Position numbers and translations under genes: made by a program. DNA of 64,000 bases, taken from positions 1-64,000 of the forward strand of contig RHPI01001327.1 of the NCBI GenBank assembly GCA_009103225.1, written 5' to 3'. This DNA comes from Chlorokybus atmophyticus (lineage: Eukaryota; Plantae; Mesostigma and Chlorokybus algae). Below are positions 42,761 through 53,816 of the stretch, piece after piece. The notes under the pieces were generated by a model that was not told the origin of the DNA, searched no databases, and was given only the letters and a program-made list of their open reading frames with translations. Each line of letters begins with the position of its first letter. Position 1 is the stretch's first letter.

Positions 42761-45471
42761 ATGGTGAAGCCAGGCAGAGCGTCAGCAGCATCGACGCCCT
42801 GGTGGTTGCCTTGTTGTCCTTGTTGCGCTGGCCACGCATGCTGGCACAGCCCAAGCCACCCATTTCCGCTACAGCTTCACTTCCTGGCGCAAAGACACCA
42901 GCCCCAACGCTGGCCCCTGCGATGTTGTCATCACCAGCATCCAGGTATGCAGTGCAGTGCGAACCATGCATGCGAACGCTGCATTTATGCACACGACACC
43001 CTTACAATTACAGTTACATTGTGCTTCAACCCCTGAGCTGGAGATTGAGCTACTTCTTCAAGAACCCTGCCAACCCGCCCTCCGTCGGCGACACCTTTAA
43101 GATACAAACAGCCCTTCTCTCTCTTGGCGACCGATCCAAACCCCGTAGTCTCACACTCGTTGTCACAGATGGGACAAACGCTGAGCGAGACATAGTAGAA
43201 GGCCAGGCTCAGGTATGGCACACACACGCACGCGCACACATGTGCCCCCACCCACGCATGCATGCGCGCTCGGGCTGACTTGCACATTGCGTGGCAGATC
43301 TCCAGGAGTTATAGCGGGCTTGGCCCGTACACGTTGTCCATCAACGACTGCTGCAGGTTTGGCAAATTGAAGAACTCCCCGAACAGCACCTTCACGGTGC
43401 AGACCGTCATCGACATGCACAATGGCAACACCAGCGGCGTGGTCTCCACCTCGCCAGCCATCGTCCAGGTGGTCCGCCGGGGGCACGACAACACCATCCA
43501 GCTGCCTGTGCTTGACCCAGACGTGGACTCCTTCACTTGCCGGCGTGCCACATCACTCGAGTCCGGCATTCTCAGTGACCCGAGCGCGATAGACACCCTC
43601 ACAGCATCCCCCTCATGCGAGCTCAATTGGCGCACGGACGGGACCGTTGTTGGGAGTTGTACGCCGTGCAGGTAATCATCAAGGAGAACCACGACGGCAG
43701 CGCCCCCGCCAAGCACGCGCTGGACTTCATCGTGGAGATCGTGAGCCCGGTCCCGCAGCCACCCCTGTGCAGCATCCAGGACCCACTCCCGTCGCAGCGC
43801 ATGCTCGAAGCCACGGGAGTCCAGTGTAACGTCCCCGTGGCGGATACCCTCACCCTCGGCATCAATGCTACGGCTAACGCGGACATCACTCCTCTCTACT
43901 CCATCACGCCTACCCCGGACGGCACCTTCGACATCGCCCCTCCCGCGGGTGTTGCGGTGCCTTCACCCCGACCACCGATAAAGGGCGTGTACTCACCGTG
44001 CAGGAGACCTTCCAGATCAGCTCGGGGGCCGATCTGCTGGAGACCGTCTGCTCCTTCACTGTCATCATCCAAGGTGAGCGTGTGTATGAGTTTGCCTGCT
44101 GTTGCGTGCGTGCGTGCTCGTGTGTGGTTCTTGTGCCACAGTGTGTGGTGTCTCCTTGTGCTGTGGGTCTCACCCCCAAGTCCTTCGTGCAGGATTTTGT
44201 TTCAGCAAGCCGGATGAGACGCCCTGTCCGGACGGCGTGTGCCGGGCCGCTGTTTGTGAGGTGCGTTTGTAGTCGTGTCGGCTACTAGCAAATGCACTAG
44301 GCTTGTGCGGCTGCGGTTGATTCATGCTCCTTTGTGCTTCTTGCTCAGCCACTGCCGCCCCCGCCCCCATCACCCCCGCCCCCACCGCCATCACCCCCAN
44401 NNNNNNNNNNNNNNNNNNNNNNNNNNNNNNNNNNNNNNNNNNNNNNNNNNNNNNNNNNNNNNNNNNNNNNNNNNNNNNNNNNNNNNNNNNNNNNNNNNNN
44501 NNNNNNNNNNNNNNNNNNNNNNNNNNNNNNNNNNNNNNNNNNNNNNNNNNNNNNNNNNNNNNNNNNNNNNNNNNNNNNNNNNNNNNNNNNNNNNNNNNNN
44601 NNNNNNNNNNNNNNNNNNNNNNNNNNNNNNNNNNNNNNNNNNNNNNNNNNNNNNNNNNNNNNNNNNNNNNCCCCATCCCCACCGCCATCGCCTCCACCCC
44701 CGTCACCACCCCCACCACTGGTAAGTACACACGTGGAGGGGTGTGCAGCAAGTGTGCATGCATGCATGTGGGACTGCATGCCACTTCAAGGCTTACCAGC
44801 ATTAACTTACTCTTTGATTGCGCACACAGTCTGCAAGCCCAACCCTTGTGGACCCCTATGGTCGTTGCAAGCCTGTGACTGGCGGCGGATATCGCTGCAT
44901 CCACCAACATGGATTCTACGAACATGTGCGTGAACTTTGACGTTGCTGTCAGTGTGGCTGCCACGCGTGCATGTGTGCATGCGTGTGTGTGCATGTGCGG
45001 GCGTGAGTGCATGCATGCTTGAGTGCCTGCCTGCACCTTGCTTTCATTCACTGGGCCGCTGCTTGTGCAGAAGCGTCTTGACGGCACCAAGGTGTGCAAG
45101 TCCTTTTGCTCGAAGCCAGTGTCCACGGGGCTGTGGCAGACTCCCCCGCTGCATCGCATCAGATGGTTCAAGCACAGCGTCCCCGACGCCGACACCTGCT
45201 GCCACAAGTGCAAGTCCAACCTCGCCTGCCAGTATTGGTCATACTACACCGGCGACGGTCATTACAGCAATGTGCGGATGCATACATGCAACAGCACACA
45301 CGCACGCACGCATGCACGCACGCATACAAGCATGTATGCGTGTCTCACATCTGCTGCTGGCTGCAGGACTGCAAGCTCTTTGGTCGCGGCAACAATGCCA
45401 ACATATTTTATGGCAACGCTGAGCTTAACACCAGCGACGACGCATGGGTTGCTGGCAAGATGTGCGGCTGA
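42761..45471 (+). pseudogene. Secreted modular protein gene (Sib-like N-terminal domain, Ig-like block, SP3-4 extensin linker, EGF-like, PAN/apple) with 3 apparent frameshifts; pseudogene or assembly errors
   Basis: Repairing single-base slips near 42810, 43655 and 43960 gives signal peptide MVKPGRASAASTPWWLLVVLVALATHAGTAQA, then THFRYSFTSW..INDCCRFGKLKN..STSPAIVQV..LYAVQVIIKE..FTPTTADKG; (SPPPP)n across the gap; CKPNPCGPYGRC; CCHKCKSNLACQYWSY..DCKLF..GKMCG*. Confidence 0.7.
44400..44670. other. Assembly gap inside a Pro/Ser-rich coding repeat
   Basis: N run flanked by CCGCCCCCGCCCCCATCA-type codon repeats. Confidence 0.97.
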
Positions 45472-46236: not shown

Positions 46237-49200
46237 TCAGAAGTGCTTGGAAGTCCTGTCTGCCAGAGGGCTACCGGGCTGCGATGGCGGTGGTTGCTGC
46301 AGCTGCGTGCGCGGGCTGAGCAACATTCCGTACGGTTCCCCCGCAGGACTCCGAGGCGACTCCTGCTGCTGCAGATGCTGCTGCTGTGGTGGCGGCTGAC
46401 TCATCAGCATCATCGACCCCCGGCCCCCACGCCCGCCGCTCCCGCCACTCGCCTTTGCAATGTGGATGGACTGTCGCACCGCCCTGTCCGGCATTGCCAT
46501 CAACACCTCTTGCGCGGTAGCCGCCTGCTTCGGCAACGCAAAGGACTTGCGCCTTCTGCAATGATACAGCAGATGTTATGCGTTGTGAGTGTGACATGTG
46601 TGTTGCAGAAGGCAAAACACATGCTGTCACTCAACTCACCCGCGATCAAGTCCGGGCTGCTGCTGTTGGGAGGGGCCAGGTGGGTCAACCGGCTGCTGCT
46701 GCTGTTGTAGCTGCTGATGTAGTTGCTGCTGTTGTTGCTGCTGCTGCAACTGCTGTTGTTGCAACTGCTGCGCGACGCCCCATATGTCCGCAAGCTCGTT
46801 GCCCACAAGCGAGGGCCGTGTGGCCATCAGCTGCCGCTGCTGGAGAAGGTGCGGTGGCTGCAAGTGCTCGGGGCTTGTGGCCACACGCAAGGAGATGGAC
46901 TTGCGTCTTGTCAACATCTGAGAGCCCTGTGCAACGGGGCGTGAGTCCACATGGCATGACACATGGAGCTCCAAGCGCCAACAACCTCACTCACCCCGGC
47001 GTGTGGTGGGGATGTGGAGGTGTGTGTCGAGGAGGGATCCTGCTGCAGTGGCATGATGATGCCTTGAGGCGCTTGCTGCTGCTGCAACAACATACCTAAG
47101 CTGCCCATGCCTGGGGCGGTGCCCATGTGGCGGGCGCTTGGGAACGCCATCGACTGACGGGGGGGAGCAGAACCTCGTCTACCCCCTCCTCCTTGTCCCG
47201 TTGGTGATAGAGGCGTTTTGGGATACATCATCATGCTGTTGCCCGCAGCATGCTGATCCCGCACAGACGGATGGTCCGGGCCTCCGTTCATGTTCATGCT
47301 CTGCAATGGCGGGGACATCAGGCCGACTGCTATGGAGTCCCTGTGGGACCTTCTTGGTGACTGGAGCTGGGCCATCATGCTCATGGGTGGCTGGGCCCCA
47401 CCGGGCGATACAACGTAGCCCGCAGCAATTGTGTCGGCCAGCACTTGAGGGCTGACAACCCCTATGGATGGTCCTCGGCCGGACCCGCGCCGGGGCGAGT
47501 TGCCGTGCGATTCTGAGCCATTGCTTGCACCTAAGAGAGATATACAACAGATTAGATACACAGTCGTTGTCCTGCAAGCTGGGCAAAGAGGAGAAAGTAC
47601 ACATACCAACGGGGACAACTCCACCTCGCGCTGACATTGGCAGCATCGTTGAAGGCATGTCCAGCTGGTGCGGCTGTGGTTGCGAGGGAGCCGTCTCGGT
47701 GTTGTTGCCGCCATTGATGCCGGCATCGATGTGGCCGGCAGCATTAGACTCGGACCAGCTGCCTTTGCCAGTGCCGGGGACAATGATGCTGCTGTTCCTG
47801 CTGCTGACTTCGGGCTTGCTGTTGCGCTTTTGGTTCTTCTCGGGGGGCATAATGGCCACCGCATACGCTGCGGTGGCGGCATACTTGAAGCTGCGGGACT
47901 TGTGCGATTGGCTCCCTGCAGGCGAAGACAACAACATCGCCTGCTGCCGCGAGCTGCCGGCCCTGCTTACCCGTCGCAGCCAGTTGCGTGTCTTGCTAAT
48001 CACGCCAGCCACGATGCCGCTCTGCTGTTGCTCGTCCAAGTGATGCCCCTGCGTGTACTCGCTTGAGTGCTGAGTTACAGACAAGGAACACACAATGCAC
48101 ACGTGCACCCACCTCTTGCTGGCTCGAACCATTGGATGGCAAGCGCAGCAAGTAATCTCGTGTTGGGGTGTTGGGGTTTGTGCTGTACTCCGTTATCCAA
48201 TCCGCAGCATCGCCAGCTGTCCCCGAGTCTGGCAACGGAGGTAAGCAAGTGCATATCATCAGTCAACCAGCCTACCAACACAACAGCAAGCCCACATGCA
48301 CCGACTTGTACCATGCGCACCTATGGGGGAAAGCTGCGCAGAACGCGTCACAACGGAGCGCTGGCTGGACGTAGAGTTCGTGCGGGACGACACGACCTGC
48401 TGCTGCATGTTGCCGTTCCAGAGGGCAGGACCGGGGATTTGAGTAAAAGACCTGCAGCCCACAGCGGTTGATACAGTGCACGTATGGTGTGAATAGAATA
48501 AGACAAGTTTGCAGGAATGTGTGGTGTACCTTTGAGGAGTTCTATCACCAGTGTGTTCGGATGCAGGGAGGCTGGCGGCGTCATCCCTGGCGGCTTGAAC
48601 CTGCTCTATGTTTTGCTGCTCAACGCCCTCACCGGGCCCGCCGTTGTAGCCAGTGTCATCTACGGCGGTGCCGCCATGCTCGAGGTACTTAACGAACATC
48701 TCGTGGACCTCCTGCTTGGCGACAATGTCAGTGGAAAACTGGAAGGCTACAATGGAGGCAATGACCCACGCAAGGAATGCCCCCGTGATGCGGCCCTGCG
48801 CCTTCATCTCCGCCATGCCGGACCACGTCTGCATCACCGCCATCCCGAGCAAGAAGTACCCCACTGCTCTGTGCAGCCTCCGCCAGTGTATTGTTGTCTT
48901 CTCATGTCGCACTGCGAGCCACCCAAACAGATACTGCGGCAGTGTGGCTGTTACGATGAACACTGACGCGATGCCATGTGTCGTGTAGAAGTGCCGCGAC
49001 GTGGCCGTGTAGCCCAGCACCACACCCGTCACGCCCATCATAAGCACTACAGTCTGCAAAGCCTGATGCGCAAACACCCAATGCTTCCACCCGCGTCCAA
49101 ACCGAGCGATGAAGACTGAAATGACGGATATCACAATCCACGCTACGCTCATGATCACGCCATGCGCTACAAGCATCCTTTTGTGGGCGCTGTTCTGCAC

Positions 49201-52200
49201 AGAGAGCGAGCGCAATGAGCTGCTTTACTGTTTTCTCATATCAAATGACCTGTCCAAGCATGAACACTACCTCAGTAGGTGAACTGGGCGCCGGGGCGGG
49301 AGCGGGTGCCTCATAACTGGTATTGGCCAGCAGGTTTGTCGTGTACATGCCCCTGTTTGAGGTGCCATGATACAAAAGTGTGTCATCCGTGGCGTGCCAC
49401 GCATATATCACCTTGGTGAGCTTTGAGGCAATGTCCCTGTCCTTGGCATCACCCGTCACGAGCTTGCGCATGAATACAATAGTGGTACCGGCGGATGTTT
49501 GCGTCCCCGAGTATGAGAGCACGTCGCTCGTGCCTCCAATGCTGGTGTCGAGGGTGGGAGTGACCGTAGATGTTGACCAGTAGTCACTGATATGTGCGCC
49601 GCTCGCGTCCACGTAGCCAATGTACATGTCCGCATTGCTCATTGCCGTGTCATCAGGGTCGAACCCAACTCCCAGCCAACCGGTGCCTGGGGAGGTCATT
49701 TGGAACTCTATTGTGTCCGTCGTTACCAGCTTCCATGCCAGCTGAAAGCCATCGGCTTTCCCCAAGTGGCCAGTGTACCCGTCTGTAGGCGGGGAAGGTG
49801 CGCTCTGTGGAGAGCACGCACAACCACATGAACACATTTACAAGAGGCAAACTGTTGACATGACGTGGTGCATCGCGCATACCGATGTTGGGGCAGGGGC
49901 TGTTGTATTCGCTCCAAAGGTAACCTGTACCACATGGAGTAACCTTAGTTAAGCCACATTATGAACGCACTTATCAAGTTGGGACTTACCAGTGCACCAT
50001 GCACTGGCAACATGTTATCATTATATGTTGCTCATTGAATCAATACCATGTCACCAGTTACAAGCGACATGTACGCAATCCGCATGGGTCTTTGCATGCT
50101 GTACAGCCTGTGACACTGCTCACCTGTCCGGGTGAGCGGTTAGCAGAGCCATGGTATGTGAGGGTGGTCACAGTGGGGTTGTACGCATAGATGATGTCAA
50201 CAGGGCCGCTCGTGGCTATAACTCGATCGTACGGGTCACCTGTGTCGAGCTTGCGTGCAAAAGATATTGTAGTGTACCCGTCCGCAGTGGACCCGCTTAG
50301 CGCCATAACGCTGTTCTGCCCTCCTCGCACTGTGTCCAACACGGGAGTAGCATAATTGTCGGCCCAATAGTCGTTAACCACAACACTCCCGTCCGATGCA
50401 GAGATGTATCCGATGGTGATGTCCGCGCCAACCATGCCACCTGAAGGCCCTGCAAGCCCGAACCCAACCCAACCTGTGCCGTGCGCGGTGGCATTGATGG
50501 TGATGGTGTCGCCAACAATACGCCACCATAATCGGTACGCCCCATTGAGGAAAGTGGCGGAATTGCCTGTGTCCCCGCCCGTACTGTTGCCGCTCGAGTC
50601 CGTGCACAGGGTGGTCTGATCCTGCCTCACAAACAGATTCCGCGGGAGGTACTGTATGTCGGTGTTGCGCAGAATAACGTCCCGCAAGCGCGTTGAACGA
50701 ATGACCGTCAACTCATCATCGGTAAACAGTCTGCAATGCGGCAAAACAGTCAGTCTCGTACCAACATCAACGCTTGCATCACAACCGTTGTGTACAGCCG
50801 TACCCATTCTCTCTGCTTTCAAAATAATAGCGGTCCCCATCGCGTATGCGTGTGTACTGGTCTTTTAGGGAAGTATAGTACAGCTCGCCGAGGTTGGAGT
50901 CGTTCACATGGTCCTCGGCGGTGCCGGCAATGTATGGATCGAGGTTGTCCACGCTGCCGTACACGTCCTGGAGGGCCTGCTGCGTGAAGGGGTCGGACGT
51001 AATCTCCGCGAAGGATGTGACGGGTTTGAGGCCGAAGGCCTTCCGGCATGTGTTGTAGTCGGGGATGCCGTGATCACGCCCTCGCTGGATGTTGGTTGCG
51101 ACTAGGTCCACTGCACCGGTCCCGGGGTTGCCGAAGAGGTAATCCTTGATGGCGGAGTCGAATTGCGCGTCCACATGCATGGCCACACGCACGGTAAGGC
51201 CACGCACAATGGGCTCAATGCCGGCTGTCATGGTGTGCATGGGCGCGAAGAAAGTCTCACGCAGGAGAAGGTGACCTTCCGGGCACTCGCGCTCGGCATC
51301 ATCGGTGCGGAAGATGATGCCTCCAACCTCACTGTGGCCGTAACGGTACGCCACCGTTGAGAAGAAGAGGTCCACTGTTGGGTTCACGTCCGGTTTGTAC
51401 CCAGTGTACTCTGGAATCACCATCCCGAGGGCAGGGAGGTACTCGTAGAAGCATATCATTTGCAAGAATGCAATGTTCCACTTGCGCGCCTCGTGGTACA
51501 GCTGGTCTTCAGTCCACGTTGGGTGATTCACCTTGAGCTCTGTTGCGAGGCGATTGTGCTCGCGCATGAAGATGGTGTGCAGCACCATGGTGGGCCCGTT
51601 AACATTGCCACGTACGTCTCCCGCCGCCAGCATTACGGGCTCTATGTGTGCAGCGTCCGCCATCACCAACCCAAACAAGTCGCGCGGAAGCAGTCCGTTC
51701 TCAGACTTCACGTGACCATCATGGTATGTGCGCAGCAGGTTTGCGCGTGCGCTGCTCTCCCTGCATCCGCCGACACTTGTCGGCTGGACGCACATGGACA
51801 CGCGCGTGCACACGAAGGACGCACAGACAAAGACGAACACGCACACGCTCTCCCATCGCATCATGTCATCAAAAGTCCACAACAGCGCACGACAATTCTT
51901 ACCCATAAACCATGCTCGCATCAACGAACGCAGTGATTTGATTTTCAAGCCCACGAGGCCGTCCTGCAAGACAAATAAATGAGCGCGAGGTAAAGCGGGA
52001 GGTAAAGGGCCAAACGACATGCAAACGTAGGTGTTGTGCAAGAATGCTTCAGTGCTTTGACACCTTCCGCGGAGTAGTCATGGAACGAAGAGCGCTGAAA
52101 GGCTATGGTAGCGTTGCCTGTACAAGCTCGGTCGAAGTAGTAGTCACATCTAGGCACCGGGATGGGTTCATTTTCCCCGCTGCAAACACACAATGAAGGT

Positions 52201-53410
52201 AAACGCCCCAGTTCCGCTGTGCATGTCTGCATGGCAGCAACTGCTTACGTGTTTGGTCCGCTCGCTCCAGTGTGCGTGATGTCATGATCAAAGAATTGCC
52301 CCTGTATAGGCAGACAACCCTTATCAGATCAAAAGTTGGGCATGTGCTTAGTGTACCAACGGCGTACAATGTATGTGAGCAGGTCGGTGGAGCGTCGAGC
52401 CGACCGCTTTGGGTTAATGACGGCCTGCTGGCTCAACCGGTCTGAGACGGCGCGCGGGCTTGGGCGAGACCCGTCACTGCCGGGCATCTGCGAGATTCCG
52501 TCTAGGTACCCTGCCGGCACCGGGTCCCGAATCTCCTCCGACTTTGCCGCCCTGCAGGTTGAGCGTGTATTTGTACGTGCAGACGAAAATCAATCAGCAG
52601 CATTGTGTTACCACTGGTAGCCAAAGCAGCCAAATCAAACACCACTGGTTGCGTGCCTTAACACGGGCTGCTCAAAGCTTTGTGCGCTGCAGCTTGTGAG
52701 CTTGCTGGTCAGTTGTGCGACCACTAACCAAGACACAAGCTATCCACACGTACATTTCTGGGTGTCAAGTCTTACAGCTTGCTGTGGTGCTGCAGCGGAT
52801 CAGAGGTTTTTCATTTGTGAAGAATTGATCAACAGCTGGCATCCAGGATTGATGCTGGCAGCTAGCTTTCACTGCTGACTGCTGTTGAATAGCGCTACTA
52901 ACAGGTGAAAGACTGCTGTATAATGCCTCATTCCTGCTTATGCTGGTACTGTACAGCAAGCGCAGTGCGAAAATGATTGCAAGCGGACTCTGTGCTTAGG
53001 GCGTGGTTCTTCAGCTGCTGCTTGCTGTCTGCTCGAGTCAGTTACATAAGGCGAGCTGAGCTCACATGGAAGCAGCGAGTGATTGTGGTGTTGTACACGG
53101 TTCCAACAGAAGCGCAAGTGCAGTTATAACACCACGTCAAAGAGAAGACGAACTGGGCACCGAGCTGTTGAACACTAAGCTTGCCAGTGTTGCAAGCAAA
53201 GACACTTAAAAGAGGAGAGATATGAAAACGAGAGATCAGGATCTCATCCAGCACAGCAAGTGATGTCACCCACCCCCACTCGGGATGCCCTATGTTGTTG
53301 CCCCATCCGTCAAAAGCGTAATGGTTGGCTGGATCCACCTGCCCGTCCACCACACGCCAGGAGGCGGCCACCAGCACCAGCAGCACCAGCAGCGCCGCCG
53401 GCTCCCTCAT
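46237..53410 (-). CDS. Heme peroxidase (peroxidase-cyclooxygenase family)-DOMON-DOMON-cytochrome b561 fusion membrane protein with a long low-complexity tail
   Basis: Signal MREPAALLVLLVLVAASWRVVDG; FDGWGNNIGHPEWG; GQFFDHD; NQITAFVDASMVYG; GDVRGN; EHNR; YRYGHS; NIQRGRDHG; DOMON1 GWVGFG..GGMVGAD..DYW..RKLDTGD..YHG; DOMON2 GWLGVGF..AMSNAD..DYW..RKLVTGD..YHG; b561 AHG, AHQ, THG, LHR. All checked junctions are GT-AG and in frame. Confidence 0.92.
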
Positions 53411-53816
53411 ACCGATGATGAACAAGGCGGAGGTACTATCTTACCAGTAGGCGCCTGCGCCTAAGCATTATCTCCGCGCCCAACACCCTCCGCCGCCACC
53501 TGGCCCGCCCTGGCTTGGCCTGGCCTGGCCTGGCTCCACCAGCAGCAGCAAGTGGGAGAAAGCGGACGCCGATACCAGCGGTTTTTGCCGCAGCAAGTGG
53601 CATCATTAAAGCCGTTTCTAACGAGCAAGCGTAACGACCGCCGTATCGCATTAAGGCAATCATACCCTATACAATGCAAGCTATACTTGGTGTCATGAAT
53701 GCAAGTTAGCTGTGGTTAAGACTGAATCGCCGTCACGTGCTACGGCGGCCAAAACGATATCAACTATTTAGGAGATAAGTGCATTCAGCTGGCGATATCA
53801 CTTGCGGACCCAGCAT

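Follow-up and report, generated by a model that had tools for sequence, protein, structure and literature searches.

How might a peroxidase haem outside the cytosol be supplied with electrons from within, and could a single polypeptide carry the whole path between the two? This question is raised by a gene on the minus strand of a 64,000-nucleotide stretch of Chlorokybus atmophyticus DNA (assembly GCA_009103225.1, contig RHPI01001327.1, positions 1 to 64,000; the whole stretch is referred to here as the window). An earlier, sequence-only reading of the window proposed that one spliced, in-frame open reading frame joins a signal peptide, an animal-type haem peroxidase, two DOMON domains and a cytochrome b561 domain, and that the product is a DUOX-analogous enzyme built from different parts. 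Here we show that this fusion exists as a transcript, as RNA contigs, Pfam matches and the open frame all agree, and we place it by sequence in an old and widespread family whose longer members make electron flow from the cytosol outwards the likely direction. We propose that the protein could act as a transmembrane peroxide reductase, a reading to which we give an even chance, and weigh it against the alternatives.

A single spliced transcript joins peroxidase, DOMON and b561 modules

The coding region reads from a start ATG at 53410 to a stop TGA at 46239-46237, and was modelled as follows.

46237 to 53410, minus strand: whole coding region, 16 exons, about 1728 amino acids; manual model from GT..AG sites and frame
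53410-53274, 52551-52368, 52301-52249, 52179-52064, 51963-51903, minus strand: exons 1-5, from high to low coordinate
51760-50804, 50730-50124, 49924-49883, 49804-49271, 49194-48530, minus strand: exons 6-10, from high to low
48451-48321, 48228-48113, 48048-47607, minus strand: exons 11-13, from high to low
47530-46995, 46926-46640, 46555-46237, minus strand: exons 14-16, from high to low; the last two introns, which lie between them, are predicted
49883 to 49924, minus strand: the 42-nt micro-exon 8, part of a Pro/Ser/Thr-rich linker between the two DOMON domains
53274/52551, 52368/52301, 52249/52179, 52064/51963, 51903/51760, minus strand: RNA junctions 1-5 (last/first exon base)
50804/50730, 50124/49924, 49883/49804, 49271/49194, 48530/48451, minus strand: RNA junctions 6-10
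48321/48228, 48113/48048, 47607/47530, minus strand: RNA junctions 11-13

The exon chain was first built by hand from GT..AG sites and the reading frame and then compared with the Logan contigs of one public sequencing run, placed on 47470-53460, a span that ends above the part of the tail below 47470. All 13 joints found in these contigs agree with the hand-built model base for base, and every one of them (13/13) has the ends CT..AC when read on the plus strand and GT..AG in the sense of the gene. A contig of 4643 nt starts at 51481, within peroxidase exon 6, and continues through exon 7, micro-exon 8, DOMON2, b561 and three tail exons, extending some 1.4 kb past 47605 into the tail. A second contig, of 961 nt, contains exons 1-5 and reaches into exon 6, with an overlap of 29 nt with the first. 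Micro-exon 8 is flanked by two RNA joints, and it accommodates the 40 nt of contig left between the pieces on either side. The sequence-only reading had named two intervals, 50640-50840 and 49200-49300, in which transcripts should be seen to cross the junctions; the corresponding joints, 50730/50804 and 49194/49271, are both present in the RNA contigs. The two 3'-most introns (46994-46927 and 46639-46556), which have GTGAGT donors and CAG acceptors, are predicted as the best frame-preserving solution, and leave the frame open to the TGA.

Such a gene model could in principle be an artefact, with the peroxidase and the DOMON-b561 part belonging to separate neighbouring genes, or with the run consisting of genomic DNA. 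A contig across two genes is in itself no proof of a single transcript, the runs were only guessed to be RNA, and the word depth of the 5' contig is half of that of the 3' contig (13.1 versus 25.7), a gap that could be due to 3' bias, a variant or a shorter isoform. Set against this, 13 canonical GT..AG introns have been removed in the contigs, depth is zero across the 722-nt intron 1 in the run's Logan contigs, the translation of the spliced model is free of stops over the 1348 codons of exons 1-13, the C-terminus of the peroxidase lies on one exon with DOMON1, and the same fusion is found in relatives from independent transcriptome assemblies. Because contigs that lack 13 canonical introns can derive only from processed mRNA, separate genes and DNA contamination were rejected, and we give an artefact of this kind next to no credence. 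The gene is real and expressed, and a single transcript joins the peroxidase, both DOMON domains and b561 in one frame.

In three runs of one study, the share of the gene's sampled words (48200-53450) that was recovered was 60%, 7% and 1%, and only the 60% run yielded contigs; expression may vary with condition or stage. The transcript assembly is broken within the peroxidase exon, at 51453-51481. A short upstream open reading frame of about 10 codons (ATG CTT AGG ... TAG; 53438-53470, minus strand) lies in the 5' untranslated region, about 55 nt before the main ATG, and this region is transcribed, since the RNA contig reaches beyond 53460. Just downstream of the gene, in a neighbouring feature, there is an assembly gap at about 44400-44700; the window holds 861 N in all.

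Catalytic and candidate haem-ligand residues along the chain

The predicted protein is divided as follows.

53342 to 53410, minus strand: signal peptide, residues 1-23 (MREPAALLVLLVLVAASWRVVDG), called heuristically from a Kyte-Doolittle hydrophobic segment at residues 3-26
50595 to 53329, minus strand: animal-type haem peroxidase, residues ~28-548, exons 1-7; Pfam PF03098
50130 to 50552, minus strand: DOMON1, residues 563-703; Pfam PF03351, 2.4e-26
50435-50433 and 50153-50151, minus strand: candidate haem ligands of DOMON1, Met602 and His696, spaced by 94 residues
49346 to 49762, minus strand: DOMON2, residues 734-872; Pfam PF03351, 4.2e-24
49642-49640 and 49369-49367, minus strand: candidate haem ligands of DOMON2, Met774 and His865, spaced by 91 residues
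48694 to 49188, minus strand: cytochrome b561 core, residues 900-1064, five transmembrane helices; Pfam PF03188
46240 to 48660, minus strand: cytosolic tail, residues 1076-1728 (653 amino acids), rich in Q/S/G/P, no domain

By its family profile and its catalytic and calcium-site residues, the N-terminal domain is a member of the peroxidase-cyclooxygenase superfamily. The An_peroxidase profile (PF03098) matches exon 6 at 2e-88; its positions 26-66 and 498-530 are matched in fragments by exons 2 and 7, and its last 33 positions share exon 7 with DOMON1. The distal motif GQFFDHD supplies Q109, D112 and H113, together with D114; the distal Arg is R234 in GDVRGN, the proximal His is H326 in YRYGHS, and NIQRGRDHG contributes both N407, the partner of the proximal His, and R412. 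The calcium loop T-x-F-x-D-x-S is made up of T174, F176, D178 and S180. The sequence-only reading had called this peroxidase complete, and the catalytic residues that it listed are indeed all there, but the Glu of the second covalent link is missing, with Val237 (GDVRGNV) standing where 8s6c has the Glu of GDVRSNE; Val is also found at this position in the Edaphochlamys and Cymbomonas relatives described below. In LPO and MPO the Asp equivalent to D112 forms an ester link, and a second ester link to the haem, through Glu242 (MPO) or Glu258 (LPO), is typical of the mammalian enzymes and not needed in the superfamily. With Asp112 kept and the Glu replaced by Val237, the haem would thus be held by at most one ester link. 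A PDB search with the peroxidase gave as nearest solved structures 8s6c_A (3.4e-75) and 6erc, Dictyostelium peroxinectin A (3.1e-70), followed by mammalian peroxidases, with DUOX1 at 2e-28 for the peroxidase exon. In an alignment of peroxidase domains all members of the family have the proximal His and most have the distal His and Arg, so that H2O2 chemistry appears to be under selection.

Both DOMON domains are cytochrome-type by profile and by their Met/His pattern, and each is a candidate for binding haem b. In an alignment of 22-23 DOMON copies from the family, neither the Met nor the His column varies, and an axial Met/His pair is the pattern seen in CDH (Met65/His163) and in Arabidopsis CRR (Met89/His180) (PMC10784552) as well as in HYP1 (M90/H174) (PMC10784544). 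The DOMON of DBH, which does not bind haem, has no Met when aligned with the family profile, and shows Leu/Glu around the Met column. An AlphaFold2 (AF2) model of DOMON2 reached a pLDDT of 90.6, and its best folds in the PDB are the DBH DOMON 4zel and the cytochrome domains 6jt6, 4qi3, 1pl3 and 1d7b, with a probability of 1.00 for 4zel, 6jt6, 4qi3 and 1d7b. A PDB search with the single DOMON1 exon sequence gave no match; a family profile then matched the DBH DOMON.

The b561 core was recognised by the Cytochrom_B561 profile at 26.6 bits against a cut-off of 23 (7.7e-6) when exon 10 was scanned alone, a marginal match that is lost when the longer open reading frame with intron read-through is scanned. 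A PDB search with the single b561 exon sequence likewise gave no match, and a profile of 13 b561 segments of the family then matched the Arabidopsis CYB561B structure 4o6y at 5.4e-9 with all four His aligned. These four His are invariant in 13 relatives: His908 and His970 lie near the outer helix ends and are assigned to the outer haem, and His940 and His1005 lie near the cytosolic ends and are assigned to the cytosolic haem. For comparison, the b561 ligand pairs of CRR are His220-289 and His256-325 (PMC10784552). The AF2 model of the segment (pLDDT 82) shows five long helices. All of the five best PDB folds for it are b561 proteins (4o7g, 4o6y, 5zle), at TM scores of about 0.54, with Foldseek E-values that are weak (about 0.04-0.2). 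Three basic residues, R928, R931 and K934, precede H940 in a cytosolic loop that aligns with the Lys-rich loop of 4o6y, and AR-x-x-R is the consensus of the family here. The motifs that the sequence-only reading had picked out in the peroxidase, in both DOMON domains (Met and His) and in b561 (four His) are all present where it had placed them.

Taken together, one chain contains five sets of haem ligands, namely those of the peroxidase, the two DOMON domains and the two b561 sites, at each of which haem binding is predicted. From the hydrophobic signal at the N-terminus, the seven NxS/T sites of the ectodomain and the five helices, the tail is predicted to lie in the cytosol, and the protein would be a type-I-like membrane protein with the peroxidase and DOMON domains outside, whether in the extracellular space or in the lumen of a vesicle. 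The linkers between the peroxidase and DOMON1, between the two DOMON domains and between DOMON2 and the membrane are each 15-30 residues long and rich in Pro/Ser/Thr/Ala, and because of this the ectodomain has the look of a string of beads, not of a rigid stack.

The tail makes up 38% of the protein and is disordered, with poly-Q runs of up to 8. It contains five RRxS motifs (residues 1226, 1362, 1466, 1534 and 1624) where about 0.35 would be expected from its composition; these are possible sites for basophilic kinases, and the tail is probably phospho-regulated. No Pfam family was found in it, and phmmer found no likeness to the b5/reductase C-termini of the long-form relatives described below; for both reasons the idea that the tail is a decayed b5/reductase module was rejected.

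The fusion belongs to a widespread and apparently unstudied family

When 1.84 billion cluster representatives were searched exhaustively with the peroxidase exon (HMMER), 9431 proteins were returned. Fifteen of the best 150 of these carry DOMON, and most of the fifteen also have b561 after the peroxidase. The following relatives were recorded.

Green algae: Edaphochlamys debaryana KAG2488140.1, Tetradesmus obliquus WIA19191.1, Cymbomonas tetramitiformis KAK3239360.1 and KAK3282883.1
CRuMs: Diphylleia rotans and Rigifila ramosa (assembled transcripts)
Chytrids: Cladochytrium, Nowakowskiella and Spizellomyces; in addition, several metagenomic contigs

The sequence-only reading had implied that such an architecture is rare in the green lineage. 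This does not hold, given the precedents in Edaphochlamys, Tetradesmus and Cymbomonas, to which CRuMs, chytrids and two ESM Atlas clusters are added: one of n=179, in which An_peroxidase is found in 100%, Cyt-b5 in 97% and DOMON in 88%, and one of n=75 with An_peroxidase and DOMON, mostly from Mucoromycota. By sequence, the architecture is old, widespread and already present in databases. All of the relatives are named hypothetical or uncharacterised, bar one 'heme peroxidase', and full-text literature searches, subscription papers aside, found no published description of a peroxidase-DOMON-b561 fusion; to all appearances the family has yet to be studied. Protein searches with a word index, run with the DOMON-b561 parts of two of the proteins, returned almost only the queries themselves and are uninformative on the size of the family.

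In a FastTree phylogeny of peroxidase domains, the 15 DOMON-carrying relatives and the Chlorokybus gene fall within one clade of 21 rows with an SH-like support of 99, the remaining five rows (5/21) being short proteins that end with the peroxidase domain. A single well-supported fusion clade indicates that the combination has long been kept together. The peroxidase of the gene is sister to two Cymbomonas long-form proteins. The number of DOMON copies among the relatives ranges from 1 to 4, always between b561 and peroxidase, and the DOMON Met/His and the four b561 His do not vary among relatives drawn from three eukaryotic supergroups.

In the long form, found in Cymbomonas, Rigifila, Cladochytrium and Nowakowskiella, b561 is followed by Cyt-b5, FAD_binding_6 and NAD_binding_1. 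The long form of Rigifila is a de novo assembled transcript and hence not an artefact of gene prediction. This b5 reductase module occupies exactly the place taken by the cytosolic tail in the Chlorokybus protein, which has no Cyt-b5, FAD_binding_6 or NAD_binding_1 and is not a member of the long-form subfamily (e.g. KAK3239360.1, KAI8802574.1). A b5 reductase module is an obligate electron donor, and its presence implies that electron flow in the family runs from the cytosol outwards; the comparison with the long forms thus fixes the likely direction.

A number of departures from the common pattern were also seen. A third ESM Atlas cluster (n=54), mostly from ciliates, has Cyt-b5 in 85%, DOMON in 50% and FAD_binding_6 in 41%, and looks like the same wire without the peroxidase. 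One relative of 1445 amino acids from Logan contigs has four DOMON domains between peroxidase and b561, and a EukProt relative of 853 amino acids has the order b561, DOMON, DOMON, peroxidase and is probably a mis-assembled or tandem model. In Spizellomyces sp. TPX72624.1 the peroxidase and DOMON are followed by the transmembrane domain of a class-C G-protein-coupled receptor (7tm_3, 7e-42), with no b561 in that place. The Cymbomonas long form (LGRX02033942.1, 10001-31197) is split into many exons, each of about 40 codons, across a stretch of 21 kb; with a 957-nt peroxidase exon and a span of 7 kb, the gene in the window has an intron density far from that of its Cymbomonas paralogue or orthologue.

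A proposed path from the cytosol to the peroxidase haem

According to the model that we favour, a one-electron donor in the cytosol, likely ascorbate as in plant CYBDOM proteins, would reduce the inner b561 haem, from which the electron would pass to the outer b561 haem, to DOMON2 and to DOMON1. It would then reach the peroxidase haem and reduce the Compound I and Compound II that are formed there with H2O2. The net effect would be conversion of external H2O2 to water at the cost of a cytosolic reductant, that is, a transmembrane ascorbate peroxidase in which the peroxidase serves as the electron sink. That cytosolic ascorbate reduces the oxidised intermediates of the peroxidase through four b-haems in this way is a reading, drawn by analogy, that we consider evenly balanced between right and wrong; haem occupancy, electron transfer between the domains, the identity of the donor and a physiological role in peroxide removal are all presumed in it.

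Several features led us to this model. One spliced, in-frame mRNA joins all the modules; the order of the domains is that of the presumed relay, from the membrane through DOMON2 and DOMON1 to the peroxidase; the DOMON Met/His and the b561 His are invariant across relatives; and the b5 reductase of the long forms implies outward flow. Redox potentials point the same way. The haems of b561, AIR12 and CDH-type domains lie at about +50 to +190 mV. The O2/superoxide couple is far lower than this, and the Fe(III)/Fe(II) couple of LPO-like peroxidases (about -130 to -280 mV) is lower as well. Compound I and Compound II lie at about +1 V, with b-type haems of the b561/AIR12/CDH kind some 0.8 V lower. 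On these textbook values the only strongly downhill step at the peroxidase would be the reduction of its oxidised intermediates.

A number of considerations weigh against the model. The members of the family are known as sequences alone, and the flexibility of the linkers means that haem-haem distances would not be fixed. The gene has no b5/reductase module of its own, and ascorbate as the donor is only assumed. A dedicated reductase for external H2O2 would answer an unusual need, as H2O2 crosses membranes, and a short-circuited Compound I would abolish the halogenating or cross-linking chemistry that the full distal pocket suggests. Finally, some relatives without the distal His or Arg still keep the wire, and given such degenerate pockets the wire may serve another acceptor.

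A wider proposal, which we advance tentatively and which in our view falls somewhat short of an even chance, is that the gene represents an ancient, unrecognised eukaryotic class of single-chain transmembrane peroxide reductases. Such proteins would share a relay of at least four b-haems, the long forms drawing on NAD(P)H by way of FAD and cytochrome b5, and would be convergent with DUOX and with bacterial quinol peroxidases; in Chlorokybus the built-in reductase would have been swapped for dependence on ascorbate and a phospho-regulated tail.

Alternative roles for the fusion, and what the proposed path would mean

The same layout could instead serve to produce oxidants. The b561/DOMON chain, or a ferrous peroxidase haem, would then make external superoxide or H2O2 in the manner of a DUOX analogue, and the peroxidase would use these for halogenation, for tyrosine cross-linking in the wall or for killing prey in a food vacuole. 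This is attractive in that the topology is shared with DUOX, with a peroxidase outside, a two-haem transmembrane module and, in the long forms, a flavin/NAD(P)H module in the cytosol; oxidation of substrates needs a complete distal pocket, which is present, and several carriers (Diphylleia, Rigifila) are phagotrophs. Energetics and domain content tell against it. On textbook values, six-coordinate Met/His and bis-His b-haems lie some 300-400 mV above O2/superoxide, whereas NOX haems are at about -250 mV, and the step from ferric to ferrous peroxidase haem would also be uphill. The sequence-only reading had listed local production of H2O2 among the options, but reduction of O2 by Met/His or bis-His b-haems of the DOMON/b561 type is unlikely on redox potentials, and a Pfam scan of the exons found no Ferric_reduct, FAD_binding_8 or EF-hand. 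We regard this explanation as unlikely. A further possibility is that two independent activities share one membrane anchor, the DOMON-b561 part acting as a ferric/cupric or monodehydroascorbate reductase and the peroxidase acting on halides, phenolics or Mn(II), so that fusion brings no more than co-localisation. CYBDOM proteins alone reduce Fe(III) and Cu(II) chelates (PMC10784544, PMC10784552), the long flexible linkers do not enforce contact between the modules, some relatives retain the wire alongside a degenerate peroxidase pocket, and the Spizellomyces relative has 7tm_3 in place of b561. However, the combination is monophyletic and has been retained in green algae, CRuMs and chytrids, and co-localisation would leave unexplained why DOMON always stands between b561 and the peroxidase; we find this account improbable.

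It is also conceivable that the peroxidase has a non-catalytic role, either serving, like peroxinectin, in adhesion or matrix binding, or sensing haem or peroxide and signalling through the tail. The length of the tail and its five RRxS motifs suggest signalling, and one of the two nearest solved structures was deposited as peroxinectin A. Such a role would sit poorly with a full complement of catalytic residues, an intact calcium site and four further sets of haem ligands that are conserved, and we consider it very improbable.

Should the wire end, as we propose, at the haem of the peroxidase, the protein would be the first known case of a eukaryotic peroxidase that takes its reducing equivalents from the cytosol through a membrane. 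One chain would then hold five redox centres, or seven to eight in the long forms. A layout with a peroxidase outside, a two-haem module in the membrane and a flavin inside would then have evolved twice from unrelated parts, once in DUOX and once in this family. The protein would be a candidate for H2O2 consumption at the cell surface or for peroxide signalling in algae, chytrids and phagotrophic protists, and a natural model of long-range, multi-haem electron transfer. The family is large, phylogenetically coherent and annotated as hypothetical, so that one biochemical study would provide annotation for hundreds of genes. The window itself adds something smaller, one expressed member of a widespread family.

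Comparison with known systems

Several known proteins share parts of this design. The short peroxidases of bacteria and protists (8s6c; DdPoxA, 6erc) have the same distal Gln, His and Arg, proximal His, Asn and calcium loop, but are soluble single-domain enzymes. In the bacterial membrane-linked multihaem cytochrome c peroxidases (quinol peroxidase, E. coli YhjA type), a membrane-anchored haem relay feeds a peroxidatic haem at the outer face and external H2O2 is reduced at the expense of a reductant from the cell. The analogy with these enzymes is one of function, with no homology, since their haems are c-type, their electrons come from quinol and they are bacterial and periplasmic. The cytochrome domains of CDH and pyranose dehydrogenase (1d7b, 4qi3, 6jt6) resemble DOMON2 in their beta-sandwich (TM scores of 0.55-0.62) and Met/His ligation, and show, as a precedent, how a flexibly tethered haem domain can ferry electrons to a second metalloenzyme outside the cell. 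They differ in that their electrons come from a fused extracellular flavin/PQQ dehydrogenase rather than from b561, and that the acceptor is a separate LPMO.

The closest precedent for the membrane part is given by the CYBDOM proteins, among them Arabidopsis CRR and HYP1 and mammalian SDR2/FRRS1, which have in common with the Chlorokybus protein a signal peptide, a Met/His DOMON outside, a b561 of five helices that has two pairs of His, and a C-terminus in the cytosol. In plants, these proteins carry ascorbate-dependent transmembrane currents through three b-haems to external acceptors, and a distance of 20.9 Å separates the outer b561 iron from the DOMON iron (PMC10784552, PMC10784544). By sequence, the gene described here has the features by which a CYBDOM is defined, with a predicted topology (definition in PMC10784552). 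Unlike these proteins, it adds an N-terminal peroxidase of 520 residues, tandem DOMON domains on Pro-rich linkers and a disordered tail of 653 residues, and its presumed final acceptor is the haem of its own peroxidase instead of Fe(III) or Cu(II) chelates.

In overall layout the nearest counterparts are DUOX1/2 and Ce-Duox/BLI-3, in which a peroxidase of the same superfamily, N-terminal and extracellular, is likewise fused to a two-haem transmembrane carrier; the resemblance extends in the long-form relatives to cytosolic FAD and NAD(P)H domains. The transmembrane module here is a b561 rather than the ferric-reductase domain of NOX, additional relay haems are proposed in DOMON (and in b5 in the long forms), and, in contrast to DUOX, the peroxidase of this gene keeps a full catalytic pocket. 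Haems of the types predicted for this gene are, unlike those of DUOX/NOX, poorly suited to the reduction of O2. The sequence-only reading had described a DUOX-analogous enzyme made of different parts; the predicted topology agrees with this, with backing from the b5/FAD/NAD(P)H relatives, and the Pfam search found no Ferric_reduct, FAD_binding_8, NAD_binding_6 or EF-hand domain in any exon. By sequence, the gene is thus an analogue of DUOX in layout and not a member of the NOX/DUOX family.

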